Source: Epithemia pelagica
Lineage: Eukaryota; Protista; Bacillariophyta
Length of the DNA: 64,000 bases
Assembly (NCBI GenBank): GCA_946965045.2
Contig: OX337236.1
Span: 1,302,001-1,366,000, forward strand
Direction: 5' to 3'
Shown here: piece after piece, positions 3,354 to 64,000 of the stretch
Layout of the letters: each line of letters begins with the position of its first letter
Position numbering within the stretch: the stretch's first letter is position 1
Notes under the pieces: model-generated
Seen by the model: only the letters and a program-made list of their open reading frames with translations
Told to the model about the DNA's origin: nothing
Database searches by the model: none
Made by a program: the position numbers and the translations under genes

Positions 3354-3675
3354 GTAGCTATTGTAGTGAGGTGTATGCAGGGTGGACCGCCACCACCCAC
3401 ACAGAATACGAGAAAATATAATAACTAGTTGTCAAAGACTATCTGCCATTTGATTATGATTGATCGAAGACAAGGACTCTAATGATGATGCGGACTTGCT
3501 AGAGGAGTAAGGACTCTTTAGGTAGTCTACTTCTTCGGCCAAACCGGACGTCGGCCAGACAGTATGACGTTGTCCGGGACTGCGATGAGACGGGAACCAA
3601 AGGATACACCCAGCCCTCATGTTCAACTCATGTAGCGAAGCACAGTACATTGTCCATCCCATCAACAAATTGACC

Positions 3676-4257: not shown

Positions 4258-5452
4258 GCGGTTTCCGATCTACTCTAGTTCCCAGTACTAGTGTATTTGG
4301 AGGAGAATGTAGCAAGTTTGGTTTGGTCTCTCTTTCTGCGCTGTATTATTCCTACATGAAGTCCGGGCATTGTTATAAGCGATGCTAATTATAGATCAAA
4401 AGTTGGTAGCAGCACTTCACTTCCATCTTTGATACATCATGGTGTCCTTGAGTTCAAAAGAGGTGTGGACTAGATCTACGCATTGTGCGTTGTGCCCCTA
4501 AAGTGCCCGGATGTGACGTAGGAGATGTCGCTAGTCGTTACCGCCAAAGGCTCGTATTGAACGCGCGTTGTTGCTCTCCAAAGGTTGCATCCTCGTCGTA
4601 GGGTGACCCTGCCTAAAGGGTTCCCTTGTCATGTCCTTCGACACTCATCGACATTTTAAGACATGTTGTTGCTTTCTCTCGAGTCTAGAGAAGTACCTCT
4701 CCTAGGTCCTAGGTACGATATGGGTTGCAAGTTCATCAGGGAGACATAGACTTTGCTATGCGCAAAGAATGCTGTAATAACGCGACTTACCAACGACTGC
4801 CATATGGAGTCACGGTCGGTGCGTCCACGCCGGCCGGTTCTCAGTCTTGCCCGACTGATGAGAGACGTAGAGTACAATACAAACAATGACACTCTCCCCA
4901 ACAACCGAGCACGCATGGTCCATGGTCCATAGTGATTCCCTCCCAGTCTTGTGGTACGGATATGTCTCTCCAGTTTGGCAACCATGCGCACTCTTGTTTC
5001 CATGGTTTGTGGTTCGGTCTGCTCTGTTGACGTTGTTGTCTCTCTCCACTCTGTTGAACGGTCCGTTGCAACGCAATATTAGAATATTCTTTCCTCGGTA
5101 TATTCGACCACGCTTTCCTTCACAACAAGGCGAAGGAAGGCTTTCTCCTTAGGAAGAAGGACGCGCTCGGTCTAAAAATCAGAGAAAAAGGTGACACACA
5201 AGACCCCAACGTGCAACTATTCTTCCTTGAGAGGTGGGCGCTGCACTCTTTGTGTGCAACAACAACAACATCCTTGGCGGCCATCGACTAGTGACAGTGG
5301 AGAGAAGCGAGGGTCCAAGAAATCAGTCAAGCCACTGTGGTTGCTGCAGCTGCTGCTTCCAAACGGAAGGAGAGGTTTTGTGAGGCGGAAAGAGCCGTCA
5401 AACTCATTGATAGGCAAGACGAACCAGTCCGATTTTCTCATTGAAAGGAACA

Positions 5453-7765
5453 ATGAATCCGTCTGGTTATCGTATTGAAGAGAAAAAGGAGACGGATGGG
5501 TATCATCACCACCATCCAGGAGCATCTCCTCAAGGAATCGCATTGGAAGAGAAATCGACTCATTCCTACAAATCCACACACAGCACTCGATCGTCTGTGT
5601 TGGAACGAGCTCGAGAATACAATCGTCGGATTGATCAACAAAACAATAATCGAAGAGCCAAATCGCTCGAGAGAAGTTCCAATGCCGGTGCCAGTGACTT
5701 TTCGGATCGATCTCGGTCGGTCGGACGGTCGCCGCAAAACAATACCTTCCTGGCCTCGGGCAATACGGTTTCCACGCATGAACGTGCCATGGCATCGGTG
5801 CGCAAAGACACGGCCAAACAACAACCATTGCAACAACAACAACAACAACCACAGGGCACTCCCACAACACCAGCGTTGGCACGTCGTTTGAAAAGCAATC
5901 AGTTGTTGCAACAACAGGCGGCCGCGGCCGCTGCGGCAGCGGAACCTCTCACCCCCGTGTCGGCACGAAATCCTTCATCGTCGTCGGCGGCTCCTTCTCG
6001 AACACCTACCGCCAGTCGTCATGCGACACCGCAACAACAACCGGTGGTGGGAGCCACAACGACGCCCCGCAAAACACCGTCGGCACAACAACAACGCGTG
6101 ACCTCGAACAACACTCATTCCAAATCACCGCAACGAAGTAGTCGATCGCAACCAAAACAACAACAACCACCACCCGCACAACAGCAACCGCCTCCTGGCG
6201 ATGGGGATCCAGAGGGACAGCAAGAACAAAACAATCACAATGCCGTGGTCACACCCGAATTATTGGTCGATGCCTTGTCGGGCCATGAAGATGGTTTGTT
6301 GGCCATTGCCGAAAAGCTCATGGAACATTACGATTCGGGTTACGATGTCATGGGCGAAGCCATTATTGATGCCTTTGCCGATGTTCAAAAACTCTTTCAA
6401 CACGTCGTGGAAGCCGCCCATATGGAAGGTGCAGCTTTTGAAGCCAGTCGTCGCGAAGCCGAAATGGCCGAATTGCGCAAACAAAATGAAGCGGCCGGTC
6501 TCCCCCTCGACACTACGGAAGAAGGTCCAGCGACACCGTCGGCCGCCACACCCGCTGGTCGACACGATGAATTTGTCGATCAAGATGTCAAGGATGTCTT
6601 GACCGAAGCGATTCGAAAGGGAACCACCATGCGCGATGCCAATCAACACGAAGATTGTTATCGCATGTACGAACAGGCCTGCCAATCCGCTTCGGCCTTG
6701 CTACCGGTCGATTCCGATCATCGAGGACGGTTGCAATTGAGTATTGCCCGCGCCGAATCCATGGGACCCGATCGGGCCTGTGCCATTTTGCGGTATGCCA
6801 TGGACGATGTCTTACGATCCGGTATGAGAGCGGGTCGAACGCCCCTCCCGGATCCCTCCAAACGAGCCGATGTTGTTCTCAGTCGACCCACACCCAGTGC
6901 AGCAGGGTCCACCACCTCACATGGGGCCAGTACTAGTACAGGCTCCAACTTTTACAAGGTGGCACAATCCCCCGATGAAGCATTGGCCTCGTTAATGGAA
7001 GAAATGAAGGAAATCATGAATGCGCCCGTCTACAATGATACACCCTTGCAATCGGTGGCGATTCGATTTTGGTCGGCCTTGACGGATTCGCAAAAATCAC
7101 AACAAAAGAACGAAGAACGATTGGAACAAGCCCTGGGGAAACTAAAGGGAGACTTTTTATTGGCAAGGGCCGAATGGGAAGAAAAACTCAACAAGTCGAA
7201 TGAAAAAGCAGACATGTACAAGGAAAAGTATGACAAACTCAAAGATGACAAACTCAAAGACTCCAAGCATTCCGGTCGGCATGCGAGCGGTGGAGCTGGC
7301 AGCAGTAGCACTTCCAGTGGTGGGTATCACGGGGACGATCTCATGGAACAAGCACGACACAATTACCGTTCGGCGGACGATGGACGACGACGCTTTCCTT
7401 CCTCACGCAATGGTGGTTCCTCCTCGGCGGCCTCTCGAACGGGTTCGGTAGCCTCCTTGGGTTCCGGTATTGCCGTGCATGCCAAAAAATTGGTCAATAC
7501 CATTCATGATTTTAACTGCAATGGGGATCACATGGCGAATGACCAAATACGAGATGAAATGCAAGACATGGCCAAAAAATCTCATGCGCAACGATCCGTG
7601 GGACAACAAGTTGCCAACAAATCACCTCATCGCAACAAACAACAACAACAAGGGACGCCCCATTCCGCTACAAGGGGTACTTCTTCCACACGAAATCAGG
7701 GAGGGGGTGCCAGCAGTCGATCGTTTCGAGAATATTCCAAATCACCCAAACGAATGGACGTATAA
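5453..7765 (+). CDS. Unknown Q/S-rich, partly coiled-coil protein
   Basis: 774-codon ORF (first ATG 5453) with a low-complexity N-terminus, ordered helical blocks (VTPELLVDALSGHEDGLLAIAEKL; AIRKG...CYRMYEQ...AILRYAMDDVL) and a coiled-coil near the C-terminus. Confidence 0.75.
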   Translation: MNPSGYRIEEKKETDGYHHHHPGASPQGIALEEKSTHSYKSTHSTRSSVLERAREYNRRIDQQNNNRRAKSLERSSNAGASDFSDRSRSVGRSPQNNTFLASGNTVSTHERAMASVRKDTAKQQPLQQQQQQPQGTPTTPALARRLKSNQLLQQQAAAAAAAAEPLTPVSARNPSSSSAAPSRTPTASRHATPQQQPVVGATTTPRKTPSAQQQRVTSNNTHSKSPQRSSRSQPKQQQPPPAQQQPPPGDGDPEGQQEQNNHNAVVTPELLVDALSGHEDGLLAIAEKLMEHYDSGYDVMGEAIIDAFADVQKLFQHVVEAAHMEGAAFEASRREAEMAELRKQNEAAGLPLDTTEEGPATPSAATPAGRHDEFVDQDVKDVLTEAIRKGTTMRDANQHEDCYRMYEQACQSASALLPVDSDHRGRLQLSIARAESMGPDRACAILRYAMDDVLRSGMRAGRTPLPDPSKRADVVLSRPTPSAAGSTTSHGASTSTGSNFYKVAQSPDEALASLMEEMKEIMNAPVYNDTPLQSVAIRFWSALTDSQKSQQKNEERLEQALGKLKGDFLLARAEWEEKLNKSNEKADMYKEKYDKLKDDKLKDSKHSGRHASGGAGSSSTSSGGYHGDDLMEQARHNYRSADDGRRRFPSSRNGGSSSAASRTGSVASLGSGIAVHAKKLVNTIHDFNCNGDHMANDQIRDEMQDMAKKSHAQRSVGQQVANKSPHRNKQQQQGTPHSATRGTSSTRNQGGGASSRSFREYSKSPKRMDV

Positions 7766-46834: not shown

Positions 46835-47760
46835 CTAGGATACTGTGCTCCTCCCATCCAATCCTTGATCAAAGTCATCATTTGAGGTTGAAAGTCGAGC
46901 GGTAGGCGACTGGGAGGAGGTCCACGAGAAAAACGAGGTGTTTGACTGGGACGACGAGGTAGACACTGGGCGGCAGACTAAGACTCTTTCGTCGTTCGTC
47001 GACTCATCAGTGCTGGGGGCGTTGTTGTTGGGTGGGAACCGGTGAAACCGCGGTTTGTGGCGGCATGCTCCGTAGATTTCGTTGCATTTGTTGATTGCTA
47101 GGTTGGGGTGTTTGCTCGTGAATTTGAGGATTTCCAAGCGTTCTCGTGCGCAGAGTTTGCAGGACTTTGTCCCAAAGGTTTTTACAGTGGAAAGCGGTTT
47201 GCCTTGCCAAAGTATGTCCACTTTGAGTCGGACGTGGTTCTTGCTTTCCTTCTTCTCGGTTTCTCTGGGAATGAAACAGGCGAAGTGGCTAGCAAACGAA
47301 TCAGAGCTCTTGTTCTTGAGAACCAGTTGCTTCACGTCTTGGACATGTTGTTGGATCCTTTTCTTTACGTGTTGTTGAGTATTGCCAATGTACTGCTTAC
47401 CGGTTTTGAGGCAGGTGGCTTTATAGACCACGATGGAACGTCTGCAGAAGCCTCCGTAGGGGCAGGCTTCACGGTTCCGGCAGTTACAGTCCAGATCTTC
47501 AAAATCCAAGGATCGTAGTCCGTCATTTAACTTGGAGTTGAGATCTCCTTGAAAATGCTCCCGGATGTTGGTGAACCGGTGATAGGACATCGAGATCCTC
47601 AACCAGGACAACGACGGGAACCGGCTTTTGATTTCTTTGAGCGTCTTGTGGATTGGTTTTTTCCAAAAGTCGGAATACCCAATCTTGAAATAAATAGCTC
47701 GTTTGCGGTCTCTCTCGCGTCGTTTTTTGAGAGCTTGTGAAACAGTGTCCAGTTTTTCGT
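46835..47760 (-). mobile_element. 5'-truncated Penelope-like element fragment (GIY-YIG endonuclease)
   Basis: Frame extends upstream of the listed ORF (KNWTLFHKLSKK...IYFKIGYSDFWKKPIH...LSWLRISMSYHRF). CNCR...CPYGGFCRRSIVVYKATCLKTGKQYIGNTQQHVKKRIQQH...SDSFASHF...C.LC..ER is the PLE-type GIY-YIG. No RT domain. Boundaries approximate. Confidence 0.75.
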
Positions 47761-48912
47761 TATCCTAGTTTCTGACTTCTGACTTTAAGACGACTTTTCT
47801 TTCTTAAAAAGTAAAAAAGTCAATTTGCAGAACTTTTGTGGCAATTGAATTGGAACTCCATTGTTCCTTTTTCAAGAATTTGTTGAGTTTGTGTGTTCCA
47901 AGATCTCTAGTAGAGGTCGGTCCCGCAACAGCTCATCTCTGCTAGAGTGCGCTGGAGAGGTCTCTGCTGGAACTAGGTATGCGCATCCGCTGGAGATAAG
48001 ACTACCTGTGCTACCATGATAAAAATGCCTAGCTAGGGGAGTACTCCTAGTAACTAGAGCACTTATCTTGGTGAGAGCTTTCCTTTCCAGTGGTGGAATA
48101 GTTGCTTGGTCTCCAGCAGAATCTTTTTGTTTTGTTGCCATGTCAATATTATCTCCTTTCAAGAATACACTGATAGGTGTCCTCTTACAGAACCTTCATT
48201 TTGGGGGTGTGCTTTGGACTGCTATCCATATTGCACTCTTCCACAGTTGAAGAGTCATCATTGTTATTGCAATCAGACACTTTGGAAGGCTGTGTAAAGC
48301 AAATGAATGATACAGAGTGACCAGTATGAAACAAACAAATGAGAAAGGATAAAAGTGACCAGTGCAGAGAAAAGAGTACGGTGACTAACGTATACACGCA
48401 ACAGAAAATCTTTGCTGGGGATTCTCTAGCGCTGGATCTCCAGCGCTGAAGATGCGTGACTGCTTACTGCTTACCGCAGAACCAAGAACTGACTTCAAAG
48501 TTAAAAGCTGAGTTGACTTCATTTATGGGCTGCCAACCCGTAATTTGCAAATTCCTGACCCCCCATAGCCCTGGACCCCCCATTTAACTTCAGCGTACAT
48601 CGCTCCTTCAATTTTTATCTGTAGGCTCTTGACCAACTATAGGGTTACCCCCACATTCCTCACTCCTCACGTTCAAGCCTTTCTATCGCAATGGCTCACA
48701 TCTCACATAAGACGGGAGAGAATCAAAGAGGAGAAACAAGAGATACCACATGATGGATATTGTAATTAGGGTTAAGGCTGCGCTTCGAAGCATAGCCTTT
48801 CTGGATTCTAGTTCATCCAACCCTTCTTTACACCCCCGATGCTGAACATGAACGTTACTATGAAATTTAATGATTGAAAATTGCCGGCCCCCAAAGTCGA
48901 TTGTTTTGCTTT

Positions 48913-49496
48913 GGATGATGGGCAGACGACTATGTCATTCATGACTGAATCCAAGACTCAGATCCAATTTGCGATGGATACTCCAATGGAGTCGACTTGG
49001 ACTCCAGAGATACTAGGGGTAGCTATGATGGCAACCAAACTGGAGTCGACATGGATTCTACTTGATGCAATCAAGTACTCCTAGGAACCTAATAGATGCG
49101 TGGGACCTATTGTACTCAATCCTAGCTACCAAGAGATTGCTGCTTTCCTACCAAAACCAATTGGTGACAGAATCACCAGCATTTAGGTCCGGATCTACTC
49201 CTACCTCTTCTGAGTGTAGCTAGCGGTCTACTAGATAGCATAGCTACTCACTTCTCATACAACCACCCGAATGTGATTCGGATGATGGGCAGACGACTAT
49301 GTCATTCATGACTGAATCCAAGACTCAGATCCAATTTGCGATGGATACTCCAATGGAGTCGACTTGGACTCCAGAGATACTAGGGGTAGCTATGATGGCA
49401 ACCAAACTGGAGTCGACATGGATTATACTTGATGCAATCAAGTACTCCTAGGAACCTAATAGATGCGTGGGACCTATTGTACTCAATCCTAGCTAC
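48913..49496. repeat. 217-bp direct repeat pair (48913-49129 and 49280-49496) separated by 150 bp
   Basis: Copies are 367 bp apart. One mismatch noticed (ATTCTACTT vs ATTATACTT). Confidence 0.9.
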
Positions 49497-49556
49497 TGAG
49501 AGATAGCACAACTATGTTTGGCTAGGTGTTAGTGACATAGCTGCTACTCTCACTAG

Positions 49557-50183
49557 TGCCGCGCCGGGTGAGGCGGCCAAAACCTCGAAAATAGCGGCCA
49601 AATGACCATGATGGACATCTAGCGTAACTCACTCAATATAGGACGCCCATGCCCCAATATCGAGCGACGTCTTCTTCAAACAATGCTCTCGGCCCCTGCG
49701 GGCCACTTTTGCTATAGCGGCCATGGTTATCGAGTTCTAACTCACCATTGTAGGGTCATTTTTTTTTGTCCACGTAATGGCCGCTAGATTGCCCTTTGGC
49801 CGCTACATTGATGGTACTATAAGTCGACCACTACGTGCCCTACCATCAAATGGTGCCTACGATGTGTCTATCGTAGTGTAAGGAAGAGCACTTTCAGGTC
49901 ATATGGGCTATCGGTGGGCGTGATAGCGCAAACAAACCCCTGCTCGATTTGGCTCGTTTTTGTTGGAACGAGATTTTCATCCGTAACTCGATGTACTGCC
50001 GAAGCTCCAATATGGTAGTTCTACAGTTCATACTTGAAGGGCTTTTACTTTAGGGTCTACCTTCGTGAAACCAACTATCATAACTATCGTAGGTGCCATG
50101 GTTATCGCAAAATAGTCGTCCATCGATGAGAATTTTCATCTCTCGCGACACGAACCACAATCGATCCTCATCGTCAGTTTCCG
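49557..50183 (+). repeat. Left long terminal inverted repeat (unique part)
   Basis: Reverse complement of about 63247-63875, with a few substitutions and small indels. Confidence 0.95.
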
Positions 50184-52030
50184 CTACTCGTCTCGTTCAA
50201 TCTTGATTCTCTGCCCCTCCTACTTTGTAGCATTTTAGTTTAGGACCTACTTGAGCGTAACGAGGTATCAGATTGACCGTAGGCGCCATGGTCATTGAGA
50301 ATGGGCCATCCATTGATGGAGGCATTTTTCTCGATGTAGCACGTAGCACACAACATTTCGAGACCGAAGGACGTTGCTAATCGTCTCGTTCAATATTGAC
50401 TCGCTTGCCTTCCTACTTTGTAGCATTTTAGTTTAGAACCTACTTGAGCGTAACGAGGTATCAGATTGACCGTAGGCGCCATGGTCATTGAGAAGGTGCC
50501 ATCCATTGATGGAGGCAATTTTCTCGATGTAGCACGTAGCACACAACATTTCGAGACCGAAGGACGTTGCTACTCGTCTCGTTCAATATTGACTCGCTTG
50601 CCTTCCTACTTTGTAGCATTTTAGTTTAGGACATACTTGAGCGTAACGAGGTATCAGATTGACCGTAGGTGCCATGGTCATTGAGAATGGGCCATCCATT
50701 GATGGAGGCATTTTTCTCGATGTAGCACGTAGCACACAACATTTCGAGACCGAAGGACGTTGCTAATCGTCTCGTTCAAAATTGACTCGCTTGCCCTCCT
50801 ACTTTGTAGCATTTTAGTTTAGGACATACTTGAGCGTACCCAAGTCTCAGATTGACCGTAGGCGCCATGGTTATTGAGAAGGTGCCATCCATTGATGGAG
50901 GCATTTTTCCCGATGTAGCACGTAGCACACAACATTTCGAGACCGAAGGACGTTGCTAATCGTCTCGTTTAATATTGACTCGCTTGCCTTCCTACTTTGT
51001 AGCTTTTTAGTTTAGAATTTACTTGAGCGTACCCAAGTCTCAGATTGACCGTAGGCGCCATGGTTATTGAGAATGGGCCATCCATTGATGGAGGCATTTT
51101 TCCCGATGTAGCACGTAGCACACAACATTTCGAGACCGAAGGACGTTGCTACTCGTCTCGTTCCATATTGACTCTCTGCCCCTCCTACTTTGTCGCGTTT
51201 TAGTTTAGAACCTACTTGAGCGTAACGAGGTATCAGATTGACCGTAGGCGCCATGGTCATTGAGAAGGTGCCATCCATTGATGGAGGCATTTTTCTCGAT
51301 GTAGCACGTCGCACACAACATTTCGAGACCGAAGGACGTTACTACTCGTCTCGTTCAATATTGACTCGCTTGCCTTCCTACTTTGTAGCATTTTAGTTTA
51401 GAACCTACTTGAGCGTAACGAGGTATCAGATTGACCGTAGGCGCCATGGTCATTGAGAAGGTGCCATCCATTGATGGAGGCATTTTTCCCGATGTAGCAC
51501 GTAGCACACAACATTTCGAGACCGAAGGACGTTGCTAATCGTCTCGTTCAAAATTGACTCGCTGCCCCTCCTGCTTTGTAGCATTTTAGTTTAGAACCTA
51601 CTTGAGCGTAACGAGGTATCAGATTGACCGTAGGCGCCATGGTCATTGAGAATGGGCCATCCATTGATGGAGGCATTTTTCCCGATGTAGCACGTAGCAC
51701 ACAACATTTCGAGACCGAAGGACGTTGCTACTCGTCTCGTTCCATATTGACTCTCTGCCCCTCCTACTTTGTAGCATTTTAGTTTAGAACCTACTTGATC
51801 GTAACGAGGTATCAGATTGACCGTAGGCGCCATGGTCATTGAGAAGGTGCCATCCATTGATGGAGGCATTTTTTTCTCGATGTAGCACGTTGCACACAAC
51901 ATTTCGAGACCGAAGGACGTTGCGATTTGCTCCTTCAATTTGGACTCGCTGCCCCTCCTACTTTGTAGCATTTTAGTTTAGGACATACTTGAGCGTACCC
52001 AGGTCTCAGATTGACCGTAGGTGCCATGGT
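50184..52030 (-). repeat. Left subterminal tandem array, 193-bp unit, about 9.6 copies
   Basis: Marker CATTTCGAGACCGAAGG recurs at 50354, 50547, 50740 ... 51900 (period 193; last interval 195). Confidence 0.95.
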
Positions 52031-52195
52031 GTTTATTATCCTAGTAGCGACCATCAACGGAAGTGGTGTTTCCATTTGGTAGTTTGCCCTTTGAATCCGT
52101 AAGTTTCTATGACTTCTGTATGACTTCTGAGTGATGATTCAAGGAAGTTGAAGAATAGTCAATGCTATTTTGATTTATATCTAGTTCAACGTTGT

Positions 52196-52717
52196 TTAGG
52201 ACTGCATGTAGTTGTCGTAAAGATTCTCGCAGTCATCTTGTTGGGTCTCGGCAAAGTCGAAAGAAAGATCGCTATCAACAGCAGTTCCACGGGAGGATAC
52301 AGTCTGAGCACTACGCATCGAGATGCTGCTCATGATTGAGAAACGTGATGCAGGCTTTTCGATCTCCTCGTTGACTGGGCTAAGGTCGTCGGCAAACTTG
52401 ATTTTCAGGTGGCGTACTGGAGTCTTGTCTCCACCATTCAATCCTTCTTCCTCTAAATTGTCGCGAATCTTGGTGATTGATTCTTGAACGGTTCCAAGAA
52501 CAACTACGGTTTTGTCCCCACATTCTTGATCCAATCCTTCCGAGAGCAATTCTGCCTTTCCAATGGTTGCTGTCTCTGCCTTGATTTTTGTTTTCTTGAG
52601 GGCACCTTGTTCAGTTGGGCGCACGGCAGATTTTGACACACTGGTTCGAACAACACTTGTGTGTGTGCGGTTTTGAAGGCGCGCACTAACACGGCGCTTG
52701 TCGATATAGAGTGACAT
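52196..52717 (-). CDS. Unknown ORF inside the piggyBac-like element
   Basis: 173-codon ATG-initiated ORF, S/T/K/E-rich; no family recognised. Confidence 0.4.
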   Translation of the reverse strand: MSLYIDKRRVSARLQNRTHTSVVRTSVSKSAVRPTEQGALKKTKIKAETATIGKAELLSEGLDQECGDKTVVVLGTVQESITKIRDNLEEEGLNGGDKTPVRHLKIKFADDLSPVNEEIEKPASRFSIMSSISMRSAQTVSSRGTAVDSDLSFDFAETQQDDCENLYDNYMQS

Positions 52718-53195
52718 TGTGTTGTTGCTTTTGTTGTTGTAGTTGCAGTTGTTCTTGATGTGTTTCTCGTTGACGCCGTTTTATGAAGGTCGCTGTCGGC
52801 TCTGTCTCTCGTTGATGTTTGATTGATGTGACGTCTCACCATAAAATCGGATCTCGTATGGGAAGCCGGCTTGCGGCTCAACGCTCAACGGAAGAAAATT
52901 TTCTTAAGTAACTTGTCACACTTTCGTAATTGCTCCCGAGTGGCAATAGTAGGAAGTCCCCAACCGTTCCCCCAAATCAAATGAAGTTTACTACATGTCG
53001 TCTGAGAAATCGATTTTACGACGTAAGAGCTTTTCCGAAGGAGAGGAGAGAATCGATAGGCCACCTGAATGAAGTGCTCACCTGAGGAAAGAGCTTTTGT
53101 TTGCAAATCAAAACGAGCGTAGAAGTAAGTGGTTCCGCGGCATCTTAATCATTGCTTACAATGGTGGCAATAACCTCGACTCATTGATTCTCTCT

Positions 53196-53756
53196 ATGCT
53201 TAGGACGGATCGAAGTACAATGTCCGAACACGAGAATGAATCGCGCAATCGGATTCTCCTTCCTAACGGCTTTCACCTCGTACAAGATACGGGGAGCAAC
53301 ATCGAGCTCCAAGGAAGCCGCTTAACCATCTACGGTGAAGCGGGTGTGAACGTACACCTTCAAGACGCCACTCTCGGGGAGAAAGGAGAAAAGGGGACAC
53401 TTGTTGTGGATCGAGGCGTGATTCTTTTACAGCGCTCCAGGTATGGTACCAACGGTGGAATGCTATCAATTTGCGCGTTTGGCCGTGACAAGAAGGACGA
53501 TTCGATGCCTGACATCGTCATCCCAGTCGGATCGGTTCACAACAAAATTCGCTCCAAGAAGTTCCGTTCCAAAAATGGGTCCCTTGTCAAAGGAGAACTC
53601 ACCATTGAGACCTCTCACTCCTTGGATACCAAGGTGACAATGGGACCCATGATCATTACTGTGCGAATGAGTCTTACTGGGATGAATGCATTCATGTCGC
53701 TCTATGACAAAGCAACGGAGACGTGGCCCAACCAGGAAAGTGTTAAAATCACGTAA
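53196..53756 (+). CDS. Unknown beta-rich ORF inside the piggyBac-like element
   Basis: Part of ORF 53097..53756, with first ATGs near 53196 and 53220. Alternating hydrophobic pattern ending in a likely helix; no confident family. Confidence 0.5.
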   Translation: MLRTDRSTMSEHENESRNRILLPNGFHLVQDTGSNIELQGSRLTIYGEAGVNVHLQDATLGEKGEKGTLVVDRGVILLQRSRYGTNGGMLSICAFGRDKKDDSMPDIVIPVGSVHNKIRSKKFRSKNGSLVKGELTIETSHSLDTKVTMGPMIITVRMSLTGMNAFMSLYDKATETWPNQESVKIT

Positions 53757-53871
53757 GCGGGTAACAAATGATAGTTAGTATTCTTATTCATGGTGGTTTC
53801 CTAATTTCATAATATGTAGAGAGGCGCAAACATGTAGAATGAGTGTAGTTCTTGTGCACACAGAAGTTTCA

Positions 53872-56800
53872 TTAAGTCGCATTTCCTCCTTTCGCCGCAG
53901 CAAAGTTCATGGCGTGCTGCTCGATACAAGTTCGTTGTTTCCCATATCGAATGCCCACAGATGGCTTGCACACTGGTGTTCCCACGTAGGTTATCGAGCG
54001 CCAAGTCTTGGTGAACATGCGGCATTGTGGATGGCCACACATGGCTCGCGTGTCATTCTTACAAATAACACATTTACGCTTCATGCCTCTTTGGTCTGAT
54101 GAAGAAACGTTGTCCTGTTCAACAACGCTGTGACAAACGACCGAATCAATTGTAAGCTCAGAAAATACGGACGCGGGTGATATACTGCTTGAACAGGTAT
54201 GGCCAACACTTGATGGCACAGTTACGGAGGCATCCGTACACACCGAAAGGTTGTTTGTCACTGGCAAGCTTTCAAGCACACCCGCTCTTCGTTCAACTGA
54301 ACTGCGTTCGGAATATGGATTGTTGATTAAGTCATAAGCCAGCATATCCGCAAAGTCGTGGATTGAGGTATTCAGGAAAGGTTCCACTTGCATGTGAAAA
54401 CGCAGTGCAAGATAACAATCAACCACCGTCATACCGAAGACTGTCGTCACAATCCGAAACCACCGATTTTTAGTTAACCATAGTTCTTCGAGGCGTAGAA
54501 GACCCTGACGGATGTGATTGTGCCGGTCAATTGCATTGGCGTGCCGAAAGTATTTTGAAATACAGTCGGGACGCTCGACTCTCCGCTGCTTGATATTTCC
54601 AAACACATCTGTGAAGCGAGCAATGTATGGTGCGCCCGGTTGAGTATGCCCGGCATCTTTGGTCATGACAAAGAGAAGAACCTTCCTTGTATTGTACTTG
54701 TACCCAACCGCTACGAGCTTCACTCCAGTGACAGGGGCAGTACACTCCATGACAAGGTAGGCTCCGGATGGAAAAGACTTCATCTGCTTCTCGATCTGTT
54801 TCTTGGGAAACCATGAGTGCGCTGTCTTCACAGCACCAATGAACTCATGTCCATCCGTGTTCAGCCCTTTCTCTTTGTCCACGTAGAACGGAAAGGAAGT
54901 GCGATTGCGTCGATCGTCCTGTTCCCTCCACGAACACTTGAGGCATTCAGCGACCTGGACACTTCCAAACCAGGAGTCGCCTAAATACAGGTAGCGCTTG
55001 GAGGCCTTTCCAGCTTCGTGGCGTGCGCTTGACAGCTGTCCACTGTATTGTGAACCTTCGACAAGCCGCAGTGTGCAGCCGCCCGATGGACCAGACTTCG
55101 CGACAAACTTCTTACGCCGCATTGGGACTCTTCCTTCTTGGATTTCAAGATGGGTCAGACACCCTGTCGTGGTGTCGGCGACCACCTGTGAATGAAATAA
55201 GGTAGTAAGGTCAGACACATTAAGTCTTCAAAACATTGTCTGTCTGGTGTTAGCTTACCTTGAACTCCGTCCCAAGAGGTTTGGGCTTGCGGGCAATAAA
55301 TGAGATATGCGGCAACAAAGATTGCTTGGTCGTTCGTGGTCGAAACGCACTCATCGACTCGTCAAGCACTTGAACCACGGACGACGCAATTATTTGTCGG
55401 CGGTTCTCATTGAACCTATCAATCAGGGGACGGATTTCATTCCATTTGTCATTCGGATCCGTCCCCCTGAAGGCATGATAGAGATGCGTCTTAATGTCGT
55501 TGAACCTACTCTCTGCCATGATGTTTTCGCCTTTCGTTCCAAAATTTACATGTGGTGATAACCGACGAGTGCTAGGATCCTGGAAAAGAGCCTTTCCTCC
55601 TACACCAAGGGGACTTGCCGCGACGATAATCCCCCAAACTTTCCACCACTCGCCTTCCGTAACCATTCGAATTTTCTTCTTTGTATCACGCTTTTGATTC
55701 AATCGATCTAAACTAAGATTAAGGACTCTCAACTGATTTTGCCAGTTCCCTGTACAGAGGCCGATTGCAAGAAAGTGAGACTGTTGAACTTCTGCGATGT
55801 AGAAACAAAGAGTAGTGCTGACTTACCTGGCCAGAAGTGCATCAACAAGTCAAGAAATGGAAAGGAGTATTTTTCATTCTCGTGGCTTATTTCACTTTTA
55901 CTCATCCTTTTGCCGAAGTTGTAGCCAACGATTGCATTCTTCTCATAGTCCGACACTTGATGATCCGGCGATGAATCCTCGACTATCTTCCACTCAAATC
56001 TTCTTTTGTCCTCTTTCCTTCGTAGCTGTTGACCCGTTAAATCGGTCGTTGGCTCACTCTCTCCGTCAAAAAGCACAGTCCATAGGTTTCCTTTTGCCAC
56101 TGGATTCTTCTTCCCGTCGACAACTGTTCCCCATTGAGCATTGTTGCCATTCTTGTGAACTCGATCTCCAATGTCGATTCCTTTTTTCTTGGGAGGCTTG
56201 ACGACTACGGTCCAGTTGCTTTCAATAAGATGGTCTTTGGTAAGCTTGTATTGCTCCATTTTATGCCTGTGACGATCTTCGTCTCTTTCAACCAAAGCCC
56301 CGAAAGCCAATTGGCGTGCTTGTGCTTGTTCTTGTTCAGCTCCGTCATCCTCGTCATCATAGACAAGTTCCACGGGTACATCTTCTTCGAGTTCTTCATC
56401 GGCAGCTGCATCTTCATCCTGATCTTCATGTTCGTTGTCACTATCTTCATCATCATTTTGCCTGGTCGTTGGTGGGTTGTTCTGATTGTTCGGAGGTGCA
56501 TCTTGACCTTGAGCGTTGTCCAGGATCGCCGCTTGTGCCAAAACTTCAATTTCTTCATCGTCGCTTACATCTGTTAATATCACTCCACCAACAGTGCGAG
56601 GAGCCTCTGAAGTCGTTGTCGTTGCTGCGGTCGTTGCAGTGGTCGTTGCAGTGGTCGTTGCCGTGGTCGTTGGTGCAGCAGTCGTTGTCATTACCGATTG
56701 CATTGGTGTGGTTGTTCCTGCTGTCGATGCCGCTGCCGTCGGCCTTGCTGTCGTCTCGACTGGGGTGTTCGTTGTCGTTGTCGCGCTCGTTGTCGCGCTC

Positions 56801-57207
56801 GTTGTCGCGCTCGTTGTCGCGCTCGTTGTCGTTGTCGTGGTTGCCGTTGGCATTGACGTGGATGTTGCTGTCCTCGATGCCGTTGTCATTGTCCTTGCTA
56901 CGGTTTCGGCTGGAACTGGAGTATTTGATACTGTGGTTGTTGTTGAGATCGTAGGTCGAGGTCCGGTTGCTGCAACTGGATCTGGTTGTCCAGGAAAACC
57001 TTCATCTTGCTTGGGGAATCGAAGCTGTGGGGAAGAGCGTTCATTTCTTAGCTCTGTTAGATTTCCTCTTTCGTCCACTCCAGCGACCATCCACTTATGA
57101 AATTCGACTGCTTCAACAATAATGCATGGGATGTCTCCACGCCTCATGAAACATCTCGATCCAATCCCCAAACCACATGATTTAGGCCTCGGCGGCAGTG
57201 GTTCCAT
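53872..57207 (-). CDS. piggyBac-like (DDE_Tnp_1_7/PGBD-type) transposase, 3 exons, 1061 aa, apparently intact
   Basis: Exons 57207-55827, 55749-55259 and 55185-53872 sum to 3186 nt. GT-AG introns 55826-55750 and 55258-55186 give joins FWP-GNWQNQL and GTEFK|VVADTTTG. Catalytic triad VLDES / LGDSWF / AIDRHN, plus RKPKPLG and a C-terminal Cys-rich CVIC..C...C tail. Confidence 0.9.
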
Positions 57208-57645
57208 TGCTGTATCGTTCTCGTGCGTTTTGGTCTTCTCAAGTTTCTAAGAGGTTATTGAGAATTGCTGTTTGTGTGTCCAATCTCCATTAGCGGTCAA
57301 AAGCAACTTTTCGACTTGCAAGCAAGCACATGGTTGATTGTTGAATGAACTGTGGAACGATGTTGGAGGGAAGATGTAGTTTTTGTGGAGCAGTCGCTAC
57401 AAAAGCGCGTGTTCCGCATGCCCGCCCGCCTTAATTAAACGACAAGAATGTTCTAAACATAATGAAATATGTAACAAAATTTAACGTTTTAACCGTATTC
57501 CCGTTGAATCGAAAGATTTTTTCCAAGTGTGGTCTGATTTGTTTTTTTGTCAAGTGGTCTGCAGACCAGGCAATGACGAACGCTCTCTGTCTGAGAAACG
57601 CTTGAAAACCCAAGACTCTCTGAGAAACCCCTACTCTACAAAAAG

Positions 57646-60426
57646 ATGGAGAGGAGAACAATGAAAACACGAAGTCAATCTGAATCGCGTCTCAAGGCGC
57701 TTGCTCATGTTGCAGTTGCTGCCTCGGAGGCGGAGTCGGAGCCACATTCACCATCACCTATGGCAGCAGCAGACGAAGCAACAATGGCAGCAACAGAAGA
57801 AGCGAGAGCAAGCCATCGGTTTCTTACAGACGAAGACCTCCATAAAGTCAACGAGAAAAAGCATGCAGACAGTCGTCGCGGCAAGCTAAAGGACGACAAT
57901 GCATACACGGACTCGGCGTCGGCTTTGAAACAGCGCCTCAGCGAGCAACGGAAAAAGGATTATGCGGAGGCTGTCGCTGCAGTAAAGAAAGTCAAGGCCC
58001 ATGGACGGGATCCATGGGACAATTTCATCCGAGGACTGAAGTTTCTGTCCACTTCGATCAAGGATGGCACTGTGCTGATCAACGCATACGGAGTGTTTGT
58101 GGCAAAGAAGATTGGCGTCACATTTTCGGTGACAGATGCGCCCATTCGCAAATCAGGCACAGGCATCAAGAACTCTAATACGGCCCCCAAGAAAAATGAC
58201 TACGGACTGGAAGTTGGGGAAGTTGTGCCCAAGTCCGTTGGGATTGGGATCCCAACCAAGCAAACTCGAAACAACTCGTGCCTCAAGTTTCGACAGTTCA
58301 GCTTCTCCCTCAAGAATGATCCGATCTTCAAGATTATGCTGGGGACAAAACACATCTTCACAGTCAAGAAGTCGGGCCTCAAGGCTGAAGAGGGAAAAGA
58401 AGGCCCCGGGTTTGGTCTTTTTTCTGTACAAGAGCACAAAGTAGGTGAGGTGATTGGTGTGTATGCAGGGTTGGATATCACCTCTCGGACCGTCGGTCGG
58501 ACCGAGTACGCAATTCAGTTTGGAGAGCACGGAGAACGCATCGTTCAAGCCGACAACGAGGATTTCTTTTTCATGGGGTTTCATTTGATGAATGATCCCC
58601 AGTATCACCTCTACGATACAGAAGAAGGACCTGACGAAGCACACCAGGACTACAACGTGCGTATCGACAAGAATCTGCTAGTTCGTGTGATCAAGGACAT
58701 CGCGGAGGGGGACGAGCTGTTTTTATTCTACAACCTTAGCTCGGACACCAAGACGATCGCAGCCTCAAAGGAAGGCGGTGAGGAGCCTGATGAGGATGTG
58801 CAGAAGAAGCGAGGTCGATCCAGCCAGGATGATTCTCCGAAGAAGGTGAAGAAGATGAAGATGGGTGGTTCTGGTGGTAATGCTCCTGCTCCTGATGTTG
58901 CCATTCAACAGCACTACCAACCGCACGACCTTCAACTGCACCATCCTGTTCCCGCCGCTGCTGCTCCTGATGTTGCCATTCAACAGCACTACCAACCGCA
59001 CGACCTTCAACTGCACCATCCTGTTCCCGCTGCTGCTGTTCCTCATGATGTTGCCACTCAACAGCACTACCAACCGCACGACCTTCAACTGCACCATCCT
59101 GTTCCCGCCGCTGCTGCTCCTGATGTTGCCATTCAACAGCACTACCAACCGCACGACCTTCAACTGCACCATCCTGTTCCCGTCGCTGCTGTTCCTCATG
59201 ATGTTGCCACTCAACAGCACCACTACAATTCTCCGCAAATACACCACCTTCAACCACACCATCATCCTCAGTACCACAGTCCACCATACCATCATCCTCC
59301 ACATTCCCACTACACGCCCGGGCATTTCTATGATGAGCATCATCGGCCCCATGTCTTGGTGGCTCAGGGGCAGCTCCCTTATGAAGGATACGGGCAGGTT
59401 CAGCCACAACCAAGCATTCCATATGACGCCCCGATACTCAATGAAAACCCCAGTCCGGAGGACTCTCACCAGGTGGAAGCGGTTGAGGAGGAACCAAATC
59501 CGGCAGAGAAAGCAAAAGAACTGAATAAAAACTATGGCCACTTGTTGATCAATTATGAGGGTGATCCACGAGGACGTTTTTTGGTCGCTCCGACAGAGCT
59601 TCTTGGATTGTTGCGTGATGTCTGGTCTCTCGGAACGGAGAAGCATGGGGACGACAAGATTTCGAAGAGAATGCGGGGTGTGCAACAATACACCCCACAA
59701 ATCCAAATGCGCATGTTTGACGGTGAAGGATTAGTGGCACATGACGAATTCACACCCTGGGGGAAGAAGCGGGTAGCTGAAATTGTGGCAACATTCAAGA
59801 AGACTCTTGCTCAAGCCCTTGTGGACATGGAGTACGCAGAGGATGACTCCTTTGCTGAAGGTATCCAGATCCACCTGTCGCTCCTCAAGACCACATTTGA
59901 AAAGGTGCAAGAGCCACATCTGGATTTCAAATGGGATGTGGTCACGCCAAGTCCGGACGAGGAACAGGGTTCGACTGAACAGAAAGGGACACCCCAAGGC
60001 AACGTCAAGACTCGTGGAAAGGGACGAAAAAAAGCGCCGTTCCGAGAACGTGTCCCATTTGCTGTTTTTGTGCCCCTGACGGAGGACGGAATGACTTTAG
60101 AATTGTGGCGGCACCGCAAGGACCACAAGAAGAATAGGCATCAGTTGGGTGAGGTGGTCGACGTTCCCTATGGAACGTTCCTCATGATGCAAGGCAATAC
60201 TGTTCACGCCGGAGGCTTCTTGACCAGTGCCCAAGGCAATCCACGTGCCCATTTCTACATGTATCAAGGGCGTGATCAAACCATTCATCCATATCTTCCC
60301 AAAAACGAGTACCAGTTACCACCCTACTACAACTCAGAAGATCGTCTCGCAACATATTACCGGCACAGTCAGCATGTCCACTATAAATCTCCAAAGAAAG
60401 TTCGTGGCGCACTTCTTCTAAAATAA
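57646..60426 (+). CDS. Cargo protein: SET domain + His/Gln-rich repeat + 2OG-Fe(II) dioxygenase-like domain
   Basis: SET at about 58351-58734: TVKKSG..GPGFGLF..GEVIGVYAG..YAI..FHLMNDP..YNV..VRVIKDIAEGDELFLFYN. Dioxygenase-like: QEPHLDF (H 59917, D 59923), AVFVPL, VDVPYGTFLMMQGNTVHAGG (H 60205), GNPRAHFY (R 60244). Confidence 0.8.
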   Translation: MERRTMKTRSQSESRLKALAHVAVAASEAESEPHSPSPMAAADEATMAATEEARASHRFLTDEDLHKVNEKKHADSRRGKLKDDNAYTDSASALKQRLSEQRKKDYAEAVAAVKKVKAHGRDPWDNFIRGLKFLSTSIKDGTVLINAYGVFVAKKIGVTFSVTDAPIRKSGTGIKNSNTAPKKNDYGLEVGEVVPKSVGIGIPTKQTRNNSCLKFRQFSFSLKNDPIFKIMLGTKHIFTVKKSGLKAEEGKEGPGFGLFSVQEHKVGEVIGVYAGLDITSRTVGRTEYAIQFGEHGERIVQADNEDFFFMGFHLMNDPQYHLYDTEEGPDEAHQDYNVRIDKNLLVRVIKDIAEGDELFLFYNLSSDTKTIAASKEGGEEPDEDVQKKRGRSSQDDSPKKVKKMKMGGSGGNAPAPDVAIQQHYQPHDLQLHHPVPAAAAPDVAIQQHYQPHDLQLHHPVPAAAVPHDVATQQHYQPHDLQLHHPVPAAAAPDVAIQQHYQPHDLQLHHPVPVAAVPHDVATQQHHYNSPQIHHLQPHHHPQYHSPPYHHPPHSHYTPGHFYDEHHRPHVLVAQGQLPYEGYGQVQPQPSIPYDAPILNENPSPEDSHQVEAVEEEPNPAEKAKELNKNYGHLLINYEGDPRGRFLVAPTELLGLLRDVWSLGTEKHGDDKISKRMRGVQQYTPQIQMRMFDGEGLVAHDEFTPWGKKRVAEIVATFKKTLAQALVDMEYAEDDSFAEGIQIHLSLLKTTFEKVQEPHLDFKWDVVTPSPDEEQGSTEQKGTPQGNVKTRGKGRKKAPFRERVPFAVFVPLTEDGMTLELWRHRKDHKKNRHQLGEVVDVPYGTFLMMQGNTVHAGGFLTSAQGNPRAHFYMYQGRDQTIHPYLPKNEYQLPPYYNSEDRLATYYRHSQHVHYKSPKKVRGALLLK
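58885..59225 (+). repeat. Coding minisatellite (75/78-bp units, about 4.4 copies) in the SET gene
   Basis: PDVAIQQHYQPHDLQLHHPVPAAAA-type unit, arranged as a 153-bp dimer repeated twice. Confidence 0.92.
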
Positions 60427-60582
60427 AAAACTATAAGTTTATGCTTGCGTGATAGACTTTCGTCTGTTGTTGTAATCCATGACCTCCCCAATTCCATTTC
60501 TCGTCTCAATCGTCCCCTGTCTCCGACATCTTCAGACAACACTTAAAAATTGATTTGAAGCTTGCCCAATCTCGTGTGCTTT

Positions 60583-63246
60583 GTGCTACATCGGGAAAAA
60601 TGCCTCCATCAATGGATGGCCCATTCTCAATGACCATGGCGCCTACGGTCAATCTGAGACCTGGGTACACTCAGGTAGGTCCTAACCTAAAAAGCTACAA
60701 AGTAGGAAGGTAAGCGAGTCAATATGGAACGAGACGAGTAGCAACGTCCTTCGGTCTCGAAATGTTGTGTGCTACGTGCTACATCGAGAAAAATGCCTCC
60801 ATCAATGGATGGCACCTTCTCAATAACCATGGCGCCTACGGTCAATCTGAGACCTGGGTACGCTCAGGTAGGTCCTAACCTAAAATGCTACTAAGTAGGA
60901 GGGGCAGCGAGTCAATATTGAACGAGACGAGTAGCAACGTCCTTCGGTCTCGAAATGTTGTGTGCTACGTGCTACATCGAGAAAAATGCCTCCATCAATG
61001 GATGGCCCATTCTCAATGACCATGGCGCCTACGGTCATTCTGACACTTGGGTACGCTCAAGTAGGTTCTAAACTAAAATGCTACAAAGTAGGAAGGCAAG
61101 CGAGTCAATATTAAACGAGACGAGTAGCAACGTCCTTCGGTCTCGAAATGTTGTGTGCTACGTGCTACATCGGGAAAAATGCCTCCATCAATGGATGGCA
61201 CCTTCTCAATAACCATGGCGCCTACGGTCAATCTGAGACTTGGGTACGCTCAAGTAGATTCTAAACTAAAATGCGACAAAGTAGGAGGGGCAGAGAGTCA
61301 ATATGGAACGAGACAAGTAGCAACGTCCTTCGGTCTCGAAATGTTGTGTGCTACGTGCTACATCGAGAAAAATGCCTCTATCAATGGATGGCACCTTCTC
61401 AATGACCATGGCGCCTACGGTCAATCTGATACCTCGTTACGCTCAAGTAGGTTCTAAACTAAAAAGCTACAAAGTAGGAAGGTAAGCGAGTCAATATTGA
61501 ACGAGACGAGTAGCAACGTCCTTCGGTCTCGAAATGTTGTGTGCTACGTGCTACATCGAGAAAAATGCCTCCATCAATGGATGGCCCATTCTCAATGACC
61601 ATGGCGCCTACGGTCAATCTGAGACTTGGGTACGCTCAACTAGGTTCTAAACTAAAATGCTACAAAGTAGGAAGGCAAGCGAGTCAATATTAAACGAGAC
61701 GAGTAGCAACGTCCTTCGGTCTCGAAATGTTGTGTGCTATGTGCTACATCGGGAAAAATGCCTCCATCAATGGATGGCACCTTCTCAATAACCATGGCGC
61801 CTACGGTCAATCTGAGACTTGGGTACGCTCAAGTAGATGCTAAACTAAAATGCGACAAAGTAGGAGGGGCAGAGAGTCAATATGGAACGAGACAAGTAGC
61901 AACGTCCTTCGGTCTCGAAATGTTGTGTGCTACGTGCTACATCGAGAAAAATGCCTCTATCAATGGATGGCACCTTCTCAATGACCATGGCGCCTACGGT
62001 CAATCTGATACCTCGTTACGCTCAAGTAGGTTCTAAACTAAAATGCTACAAAGCAGGAAGGTAAGCGAGTCAATATTGAACGAGACGAGTAGCAACGTCC
62101 TTCGGTCTCGAAATGTTGTGTGCTACGTGCTACATCGAGAAAAATGCCTCCATCAATGGATGGCCCATTCTCAATGACCATGGCGCCTACGGTCAATCTG
62201 AGACTTGGGTACGCTCAACTAGGTTCTAAACTAAAATGCTACAAAGTAGGAAGGCAAGCGAGTCAATATTAAACGAGACGAGTAGCAACGTCCTTCGGTC
62301 TCGAAATGTTGTGTGCTACGTGCTACATCGGGAAAAATGCCTCCATCAATGGATGGCACCTTCTCAATGACCATGGCGCCTACGGTCAATCTGAGACTTG
62401 GGTACGCTCAAGTAGGTTCTAAACTAAAATGCTACAAAGTAGGAAGGCAAGCGAGTCAATATTAAACGAGACGAGTAGCAACGTCCTTCGGTCTCGAAAT
62501 GTTGTGTGCTACGTACTACATCGAGAAAAATGCCTCCATCAATGGATGGCACCTTCTCAATGACCATGGCGCCTACGGTCAATCTGATACCTCGTTACGC
62601 TCAAGTAGGTTCTAAACTAAAATGCTACAAAGCAGGAGGGGCAGCGAGTCAATTTTGAACGAGACGATTAGCAACGTCCTTCGGTCTCGAAATGTTGTGT
62701 GCTACGTGCTACATCGAGAAAAATGCTTCCATCAATGGATGGCCCATTCTCAATGACCATGGCGCCTACGGTCAATCTGAGACTTGGGTACGCTCAAGTA
62801 GGTTCTAAACTAAAATGCGACAAAGTAGGAGGGGCAGAGAGTCAATATGGAACGAGACGAGTAGCAACGTCCTTCGGTCTCGAAATGTTGTGTGCTACGT
62901 GCTACATCGAGAAAAATGCCTCCATCAATGGATGGCACCTTCTCAATGACCATGGCGCCTACGGTCAATCTGATACCTCGTTACGCTCAAGTAGGTTCTA
63001 AACTAAAATGCTACAAAGTAGGAAGGCAAGCGAGTCAATATTGAACGAGACGAGTAGCAACGTCCTTCGGTCTCGAAATGTTGTGTGCTACGTGCTACAT
63101 CGAGAAAAATGCCTCCATCAATGGATGGCCCATTCTCAATGACCATGGCGCCTACGGTCAATCTGAGACTTGGGTACGCTCAAGTAGGTTCTAAACTAAA
63201 ATGCTACAAAGTAGGAGGGGCAGAGAATCAAGATTGAACGAGAGTA
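60583..63246 (+). repeat. Right subterminal tandem array, 193-bp unit, about 13.8 copies, inverted relative to the left array
   Basis: Marker CCTTCGGTCTCGAAATG recurs every 193 bp from 60748 to 63064 (13 copies) plus partial units. Confidence 0.95.
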
Positions 63247-63875
63247 GCGGAAACTGACGATGAGGATCGATTGTGGTTCGTGTCGCGAGAGATGAAAATC
63301 CTCATCGATGGACGACTATTTTGCGATAACCGTGGCACCTACGATAGTTATGATAGTTGGTTTCACGAAGGTAGACCCTAAAGTAAAAGCCCTTCAAGTA
63401 TGAACTGTAGAACTACCATATTGGAGCTTCGGCAGTACATCGAGTTACGGATGAAAATCTCGTTCCAACAAAAACGAGCCAAATCGAGCAGGGGTTTGTT
63501 TGCGCTATCACGCCCACCGATAGCCCATATGACCTGAAAGTGCTCTTCCTTACACTACAATAGACACATCGTAGGCACCATTTGATGGTAGGGCACGTAG
63601 TGGTCGACTTATAGTACCATCAATGTAGCGGCCAAAGGGCAATCTAGCGGCCATTACGTGGACAAAAAAAAAATGACCCTACAATGGTGAGTTAGAACTC
63701 GATAACCATGGCCGCTATAGCAAAAGTGGCCCGCAGGGGCCGAGAGCATTGTTTGAAGAAGACGTCGCTCGATATTGGGGCATGGGCGTCCTATATTGAG
63801 TGAGTTACGCTAGATGTCCATCATGGTCATTTGGCCGCTATTTTCGAGGTTTTGGCCGCCTCACCCGGCGCGGCA
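63247..63875 (-). repeat. Right long terminal inverted repeat (unique part)
   Basis: Reverse complement of 49557-50183. Confidence 0.95.
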
Positions 63876-64000
63876 CTAGAGAACGTGGGGAGATGTTTCG
63901 TGGGTTGGTTCGTTGGGCGTGATTCTGACGTGGAACAGCGTGGTGAAATGGTTTTTATTTAATGGATTGATAAAACAATGGATGACCGTTCTTCGATCAT

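Follow-up and report, generated by a model that had tools for sequence, protein, structure and literature searches.

The piggyBac transposon, a workhorse of genome engineering, has a strict TTAA target as one of its defining traits. We analysed a 64,000-nucleotide stretch of the genome of the diatom Epithemia pelagica (the window hereafter), which holds at positions 49557-63875 a 14,319-bp transposon of the piggyBac superfamily with the termini TGCC...GGCA. With the piggyBac superfamily as known from Trichoplusia ni, this element shares a transposase of the DDE_Tnp_1_7 type with three invariant aspartates and a Cys-rich C-terminus, and a 4-bp duplication with a central TA at its target. However, whereas piggyBac uses TTAA, ends in CCC...GGG, has terminal inverted repeats (TIRs) of 13-19 bp and carries one gene, the diatom element uses CTAG or CTAT, has TIRs of about 630 bp followed by kilobase arrays, and carries four genes; its transposase further differs from that of piggyBac by a 460-aa N-terminal extension and two introns. 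One of the added genes, here called the cargo, encodes a single protein with a SET region and a dioxygenase-like domain. The explanation to which we incline, with somewhat more confidence than doubt, is that the window holds a member of a young copy family, within a diatom lineage of large foldback-like piggyBac transposons with selected accessory genes, of which the cargo may act against silencing.

Accessory genes of a comparable kind have been described on other transposons. Red-algal Plavaka elements carry PAG2, an adenine methylase with a SET domain, and PAG3, a ParB-like protein with a 2-oxoglutarate (2OG) oxygenase domain, which has tandem repeats beside it and whose best HHpred match is the structure 2OPW_A (10.1101/2025.02.11.637652). 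Compared by description, this cassette and the diatom element are alike in combining a DNA transposon with conserved SET and 2OG-oxygenase-like accessory functions and with tandem repeats by the oxygenase gene, but the red-algal transposase is of the EnSpm/Plavaka type, whereas the diatom element has a piggyBac transposase and joins the two domains in a single polypeptide, in which neither a DNA methylase nor a ParB domain was detected. 2OPW_A is a PhyH-family structure, the same kind that the Atlas language-model features suggest for the diatom cargo. In Phytophthora, HarbingerS and MuDR elements carry a gene for a SET protein (Kojima and Jurka 2014, cited through PMC12730594); set beside the diatom cargo by description, they too are stramenopile DNA transposons with a SET accessory gene, although of another superfamily and, as far as that citation goes, with no reported dioxygenase fusion. 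Helitrons also carry accessory genes of the SET/2OG type (10.1101/2025.02.11.637652; PMC12730594). In fungi, TET/JBP dioxygenases ride on Kyakuja, Zisupton, Plavaka and other DNA transposons, where these Fe(II)/2OG enzymes have been proposed to act against silencing and where accessory genes shift between transposon lineages (PMC12730594); the C-terminal domain of the diatom cargo has PhyH-like affinities, in contrast to the TET/JBP-like domains of the fungal elements. VANC of the Arabidopsis VANDAL elements (MuDR) offers an analogy only, that of an element-encoded factor acting on its own tandem motifs, and has no sequence relationship to the cargo.

The outer architecture likewise has precedents in part. 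Drosophila FB and Galileo, of other superfamilies, have long inverted arms of tandem subrepeats as in the diatom element, and Teratorn, a giant piggyBac-herpesvirus fusion with TIRs of 18 bp (PMC6431247), resembles it in that a piggyBac transposase moves outsized cargo, although the Teratorn cargo is a viral genome. In the literature searched, we found no description of a cargo of this kind in a diatom, nor of CTAG-targeting piggyBac elements. An earlier, sequence-only reading of this DNA had regarded the architecture as not known from diatoms; transposon-borne SET and 2OG genes as such are already known elsewhere (10.1101/2025.02.11.637652; PMC12730594). New with respect to the literature searched are the piggyBac carrier, the two-domain fusion protein, two further conserved open reading frames (ORFs) and the CTAG/CTAT target.

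The structure of the element is firm. The 4-bp direct repeats outside TGCC...GGCA vary by copy: they read CTAG/CTAG in the window and in the copy L005 and CTAT/CTAT in the copies L001 and L003, and the left flank of L004 is GTAG. CTAT is non-palindromic and therefore cannot belong to the inverted repeat. Contigs from three public DNA runs part from the window at 49556 and run on into the sequence next to the right CTAG, at 63880 (one mismatch in 30 letters), thereby joining the two flanks across an empty site with a single CTAG. In contigs of these runs, the flanks of the element reach a depth several-fold above that of its interior; the element therefore sits within another, more abundant repeat, and for the same reason the empty site is more likely a paralogous copy of this flanking repeat than the other allele. 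Whether paralogue or allele, it fixes the boundaries at 49557-63875. Over the left flank, from 47000 to 49552, contig depth is about 1,400-5,900, against about 470 inside the element. CTAG also stands next to TGCC in two sister families, described below. The duplication is thus 4 bp long with a central TA, as in piggyBac, yet TTAA was seen neither in the window, L001, L003 and L005, nor at the left flank of L004 or the empty site, and the termini, with their long inverted repeats and arrays, are not the short CCC...GGG TIRs typical of piggyBac. The sequence-only reading had placed a complete transposon at 49553-63879; it is complete, but the outermost CTAGs are the target duplication and lie outside the element proper. 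A private 11-bp insertion at 52108, in the non-coding left part, is absent from the other four copies and from the read-derived contigs.

Inverted-repeat and tandem-array coordinates confirm the TIRs of about 630 bp and the kilobase inverted satellite arms reported in the sequence-only reading. The unique TIR is composed of two inverted repeat pairs, 49550-49767/63665-63882 at 100% identity and 49759-50189/63242-63672 at 99%, and encloses arrays of 193-bp units extending over 1.85 kb on the left and 2.67 kb on the right, in opposite orientation and with 93% matches. These long inverted arms of tandem subrepeats inside unique TIRs, which recur in the sister family L009, are those of a foldback-type architecture. 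The window contains 27 occurrences of a 13-nt motif, GCCATGGTYATYG, where 0.35 would be expected, and all of them lie inside the element, two in each unique TIR and one in each 193-bp unit, every one oriented toward the nearer end. The inner motif of the TIR is separated from the first motif of the array by 190 bp, a spacing which suggests that the 193-bp unit is an amplified subterminal segment. The number of units differs among copies, in the left array from roughly 2 to 9, and accounts for most of their length differences.

The transposase, encoded on the minus strand in three exons, is 1061 aa long without an internal stop, and its introns of 77 and 73 nt are both GT-AG and interrupt the same codons, again as GT-AG, in L009. 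Exon 2 matches Pfam DDE_Tnp_1_7 (PF13843) with an E-value of 2.5e-9 and 37.3 bits (cut-off 22.4). Exon 3 alone has no Pfam match, and its 78 homologues, many of which carry PF13843, include MMETSP transcripts and an entry from the diatom Attheya. Three aspartates, D590 (LDESMS), D694 (GDSWFGS) and D844 (AIDRHNH), do not vary in alignments of 11-20 members of the family, and on the basis of a motif comparison with T. ni piggyBac, drawn from established knowledge, we take them to be the DDD triad. Near the C-terminus, five cysteines and one histidine are almost invariant, as in a Cys-rich domain. In exon 1, conserved blocks at aa 7-80 and aa 300-461 (50-55% identity between families) surround non-conserved Thr/Ala-rich and acidic low-complexity stretches; a Pfam search of these N-terminal blocks gave no match, and the extension could be a targeting module. 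Single-sequence PDB searches with both transposase pieces returned nothing meaningful. The Pfam match of exon 2, the invariant aspartates and the conserved introns together bear out a spliced, piggyBac-type DDD transposase, as had been proposed from the letters of the window.

Across a short spacer, which is presumably a bidirectional promoter, the cargo gene diverges from the transposase gene. The sequence-only reading had described it as a divergent 926-aa gene with SET and dioxygenase-like motifs, a description that holds: the frame is open, and the SET region passes the Pfam threshold in the sister family. The orthologous cargo of L009 matches the full Pfam SET profile with 28.0 bits and an E-value of 3e-6, above the cut-off; the window cargo covers profile positions 1-105 of 105 with 21.3 bits and an E-value of 4e-4, just below the cut-off of 22.4. 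Language-model features of the Atlas assign the same region to SET with a score of 0.96, with 73 of 100 matches falling in the SET set, and the region retains D-E-L-F-L-F-Y with the tyrosine Y362, a motif placed by inspection. No SET chain was found in the PDB with a four-sequence profile of the SET region, and a single-sequence PDB search with the cargo gave nothing meaningful; a word-index homologue search with the whole cargo recovered its own cluster only, probably since the repeat region swamped the words. As for fusions outside this genome, the profile of the N-terminal and SET regions matched none of 149 representatives of the C-terminal family. A Pfam search of the N-terminus found nothing, and the possibility that its helical region is a relative of Med26/TFIIS-N was rejected (hhalign probability 0.4% against the domain of one homologue). 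In two DNA runs, contigs link 58921 and 59622 by three different letters and omit 700 bp of the repeat-rich cargo linker, which looks like a deletion variant among unassembled copies. Both enzymatic assignments of the cargo domains are probable.

For the C-terminal domain, the evidence makes a PhyH-like Fe(II)/2OG dioxygenase the likely assignment. A profile search of 1.84 billion representatives yielded 285 relatives at an E-value of 1e-3 or below, so the family has at least that many. Nine residues (Q755, H758, D760, P810, H854, G856, R867, H869 and Y871) are invariant in 36 sequences with 20-58% identity to the window domain, and the H, D and H of the metal triad are invariant across 65; the domain thus contains HxD/E...H followed, after the distal histidine, by a basic residue of the 2OG-binding kind (H758, D760, H854, R867). 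The sole consistent PDB profile match is the PhyH-type Fe(II)/2OG enzyme FtmOx1 (verruculogen synthase), whose E-value falls from 0.7 to 0.019 (17.5 bits) with a deeper profile, still short of the customary significance threshold. Within this alignment lie the PLTE...G motif and H854, the latter paired with the histidine of VVHAGG in FtmOx1, the distal iron ligand of that enzyme. Neighbours of the domain in the Atlas are mostly PhyH/2OG clusters, with scores of 0.93-0.94. The domain belongs to an unannotated protein family conserved in other diatoms and microeukaryotes, among whose members are MMETSP transcripts and a hypothetical protein from the diatom Epithemia clementina. Two relatives (L010 10001-11212 and L011 10001-11572) adjoin a PP2C phosphatase gene, in E. 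clementina and in a metagenome scaffold, and a third likewise lies among ordinary genes. A role in the nucleus is suggested by one of the PP2C-adjacent relatives, which is joined to a Med26/TFIIS N-terminal domain.

Evidence that the accessory genes are maintained comes from two sister families with about 65% DNA identity to the window element and with the same layout and cargo. L009, in which the right end is missing, has inverted arrays with a period of 188-190 bp, the transposase, counterparts of the two small ORFs and a divergent, intact cargo of 891 aa; its TIR has 75% identity over the terminal 257 bp, and its cargo is 52-53% identical to that of the window in both domains. In L008, representing the third family, the cargo is degraded and partly duplicated. 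Three repeats of the 3' cargo segment (aa 626-718 and 833-923), at a spacing of about 1.25 kb, lie between 3286 and 6667 of L008, beside a degraded full copy. At L007 (9227-10687) lies an old cargo pseudogene with SET and dioxygenase-like parts, a short linker, frameshifts and an in-frame stop, in which a C-terminal ORF of 240 aa is open; no transposase or TIR was found near this relic.

Between the window and L009, the ratio of nonsynonymous to synonymous divergence (dN/dS, rough since dS is about 1-2 and near saturation) is 0.34 for the whole cargo, with 0.14 in the SET region, 0.30 in the C-terminal domain and 0.59 in the linker, and 0.18 for transposase exon 3; the values for the two small ORFs are given in Table 1. 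Such low ratios between families indicate that the cargo and both small ORFs were kept by selection while the lineage diversified. The sequence-only reading had named a cargo confined to this copy, a ratio near 1 and recent capture of a host gene as outcomes that would speak against it. Instead, the cargo, including the SET gene, is found in all five copies and a fragment, and its nearest homologues in ordinary neighbourhoods are distant; a ratio of about 1 is absent between families and appears only among copies, as for dead copies.

The five full or near-full copies (one without its right end) and the one fragment were found in assembly ERZ21939226; the cargo protein and the transposase pieces each fall in 90%-identity clusters with members on the same five contigs, and the fragment lies on a sixth. 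Among these copies, L001 to L005, L002 is the window's own locus. Their internal 8.5 kb is 98.3-99.5% identical, and the substitutions, 192 private versus 3 shared, describe a star-like burst from one source, as would be expected of a young, recently active family. The private changes follow a neutral pattern, with pN/pS (the corresponding ratio within the family) of 1.02 for the cargo gene and 0.71 for that of the transposase; values near 1 are expected because dead copies drift, for any transposon gene. The cargo frame is open in the window copy alone, being broken by a nonsense change in L001, by 41-bp and 153-bp deletions in L003, by a 19-bp deletion in L004 and by 1-bp deletions in L005. 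Even the window copy has 8 private amino-acid changes in its transposase and 7 in its cargo, the latter including R849Q and D851N in RGDxVHAGG, the most conserved motif of the family, positions at which R and D are present in the other copies and in 90% or more of the wider family. The transposase had been called intact; its frame and that of the cargo are indeed open, which with such replacements is no proof of function, and this copy is probably no longer fully functional, having drifted neutrally after insertion.

Beyond the transposase and cargo, to which the sequence-only reading had confined the gene content, the left half of the element encodes two small proteins that it missed (Table 1). 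Of all proteins of the element, ORF178 is the best conserved; a TTG-started upstream extension of its frame is closed by a stop in the family consensus. It has no Pfam match, and its Atlas matches are at chance level; ORF173 likewise has no Pfam match.

Table 1. Features of the piggyBac-type element, with window coordinates, strand and the evidence for each assignment.
Feature	Position	Strand	Evidence
Left target-site duplication, CTAG	49553..49556	.	direct 4-bp repeats and empty site; loose contig end at 49556
Left unique TIR, begins TGCC; two copies of the 13-nt motif GCCATGGTYATYG	49557..50182	+	inverted-repeat match, motif count
Left subterminal array, 9.6 units of 193 bp, one 13-nt motif per unit	50183..52030	+	tandem-repeat and motif counts
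ORF173, 173 aa	52196..52717	-	54-55% identity in two sister families; dN/dS 0.30
ORF178, 178 aa, convergent with transposase	53220..53756	+	70-75% identity, three families; dN/dS 0.19
Transposase exon 3, aa 625-1061 including stop; catalytic D694 and D844, Cys-rich C-terminal domain	53872..55185	-	homologue alignments
Transposase exon 2, aa 461-624; catalytic D590	55259..55749	-	Pfam DDE_Tnp_1_7, splice sites
Transposase exon 1, aa 1-460; N-terminal extension	55827..57207	-	splice sites, between-family conservation
Spacer of 438 bp between divergent transposase and cargo genes	57208..57645	.	gene arrangement; 96-99% identity among copies
Cargo gene, 926 aa, one exon	57646..60426	+	open reading frame; divergent from transposase, 438 bp from its start
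Cargo SET domain, aa 255-363	58408-58734	+	Pfam, Atlas
Cargo His/Pro/Gln-rich repeats	58882-59220	+	sequence
Cargo C-terminal dioxygenase-like domain, about aa 625-926; H758, D760, H854, R867		+	family alignment
Right subterminal array, 13.8 units of 193 bp, inverted relative to left array	60574..63243	-	tandem-repeat and motif counts
Right unique TIR, ends GGCA	63244..63875	-	inverted-repeat match
Right target-site duplication, CTAG	63876..63879	.	direct repeats and empty site

The DDD transposase probably moves the element by cut-and-paste, duplicating a 4-bp CTAG or CTAT, and would bind the 13-nt motifs of the TIRs and arrays. The SET-dioxygenase fusion may work in the nucleus on chromatin or on transcription-associated proteins, thereby increasing the chance that the element is expressed or moves; the countering of host silencing, which we advance as a hypothesis, would be the most plausible route. 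A far-reaching version, which we regard as unlikely, holds that a piggyBac lineage specific to diatoms, its target shifted from TTAA to CTAG, encodes a bifunctional chromatin enzyme, a SET writer joined to a PhyH-like dioxygenase, which, together with the two small proteins, is recruited to the 193-bp arrays so that active copies are freed of repressive marks, the module perhaps being exchanged between transposon superfamilies within the genome.

Several observations weigh against a cargo that acts enzymatically against silencing, and the alternatives draw on some of them. A search of public runs listed none of RNA, and contigs from the three runs that hold the element cross both transposase introns unspliced and behave as DNA; none of 65 scanned members of the C-terminal family has a Pfam domain over that region; and the FtmOx1 match, as noted, falls short of the usual significance. 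The copies also decay preferentially at CpG: transitions there (C>T or G>A) make up 58 of the 192 private substitutions (30%), whereas CpG accounts for just 10.9% of positions (p 3e-13). This excess is the pattern of 5-methylcytosine deamination, and the inserted copies therefore appear to be methylated, so that any protection from methylation would be incomplete or limited to active copies. At the same time, the family consensus is not CpG-depleted (observed/expected 0.93); it seems, then, that inserted copies are methylated and that the lineage they came from is either young or protected. As read from these substitutions, CpG decay seems neither to prove nor to exclude an anti-silencing role, and argues against full protection.

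That the copies do not escape methylation also counts towards another role for the fusion protein, one in transposition itself, in which its substrate would be the transposase, a host cofactor or the target chromatin and its effect to favour excision or integration or to direct where the element inserts. Enzymes of the SET and PhyH-like kinds are known to use non-histone substrates as well, and the cargo has been kept alongside the transposase in three families at a similar rate of divergence. We consider such a role unlikely.

Fainter still is the prospect that one or both cargo domains are catalytically dead and serve as binding or reader modules or in some other non-enzymatic capacity. In all three families, N316-D-P stands where canonical SET enzymes have N-H-S/C (a motif placed by inspection), which leaves the catalytic competence of the SET region uncertain; its match in the window lies below the Pfam cut-off, and AlphaFold2 models of both cargo domains, built from four-sequence alignments, show no confident fold (mean predicted local distance difference test score, pLDDT, 33). 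However, the invariance of HxD...H...R throughout a deep family is hard to explain without binding of metal and 2OG, and in the SET region the tyrosine of ELFLFY is kept and dN/dS is the lowest of the protein.

The arrays invite a similar question, namely whether they are landing pads for the cargo protein, as tandem motifs are for VANC or as proposed for the ParB-2OG protein PAG3, in place of transposase-binding or structural repeats. The right array begins 148 bp past the cargo stop codon, L009 keeps arrays of a similar period although their sequence has diverged to about 65%, and in red algae the tandem repeats adjoin the 2OG accessory gene (10.1101/2025.02.11.637652). Nevertheless, the motif of the unit also occurs twice in the unique TIR and is end-oriented, as is typical of transposase sites, array length varies widely (about 9 and 14 units in the window versus about 2 and 4 in L004), and Pfam searches detected no DNA-binding domain in the cargo. 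Binding of the arrays by the cargo protein is thus possible, with a small chance of being their purpose, and the simpler reading is that the 13-nt motifs are putative transposase-binding sites.

Finally, the idea of a cargo that rides along passively, as a host gene picked up by accident and of no benefit to the element, is already disfavoured and most improbable: homologues of its C-terminal domain do lie in ordinary neighbourhoods, beside a PP2C gene in E. clementina and in the metagenome scaffold, and its pN/pS among copies is near 1, but this ratio is expected of any gene of a transposon in dead copies (the transposase has 0.71), the cargo has stayed open over 891-926 codons between families at a dS of about 1 with domain ratios of 0.14-0.30, it is present in every copy, and the three relatives in ordinary neighbourhoods are only about 31-35% identical to its C-terminal domain, which therefore represents an old acquisition and not a recent capture.

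A putative anti-silencing accessory gene, kept by selection on a foldback-like piggyBac lineage, remains the explanation that we prefer. With its CTAG/CTAT target, this natural and recently active lineage offers a comparison for how a piggyBac transposase reads its target. It is also a clear example of chromatin-type accessory genes maintained by selection on a eukaryotic DNA transposon, in the form of one SET-dioxygenase fusion, whose C-terminal domain typifies a family of 285 or more representatives that share an invariant metal-binding signature. As diatoms are open to transformation and to profiling of methylation and histone marks, the long-standing idea of counter-silencing enzymes borne by transposons becomes testable beyond plants and fungi. 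If a bifunctional enzyme with the arrays as its landing pad were to prove true, the element would be a self-protecting transposon module.

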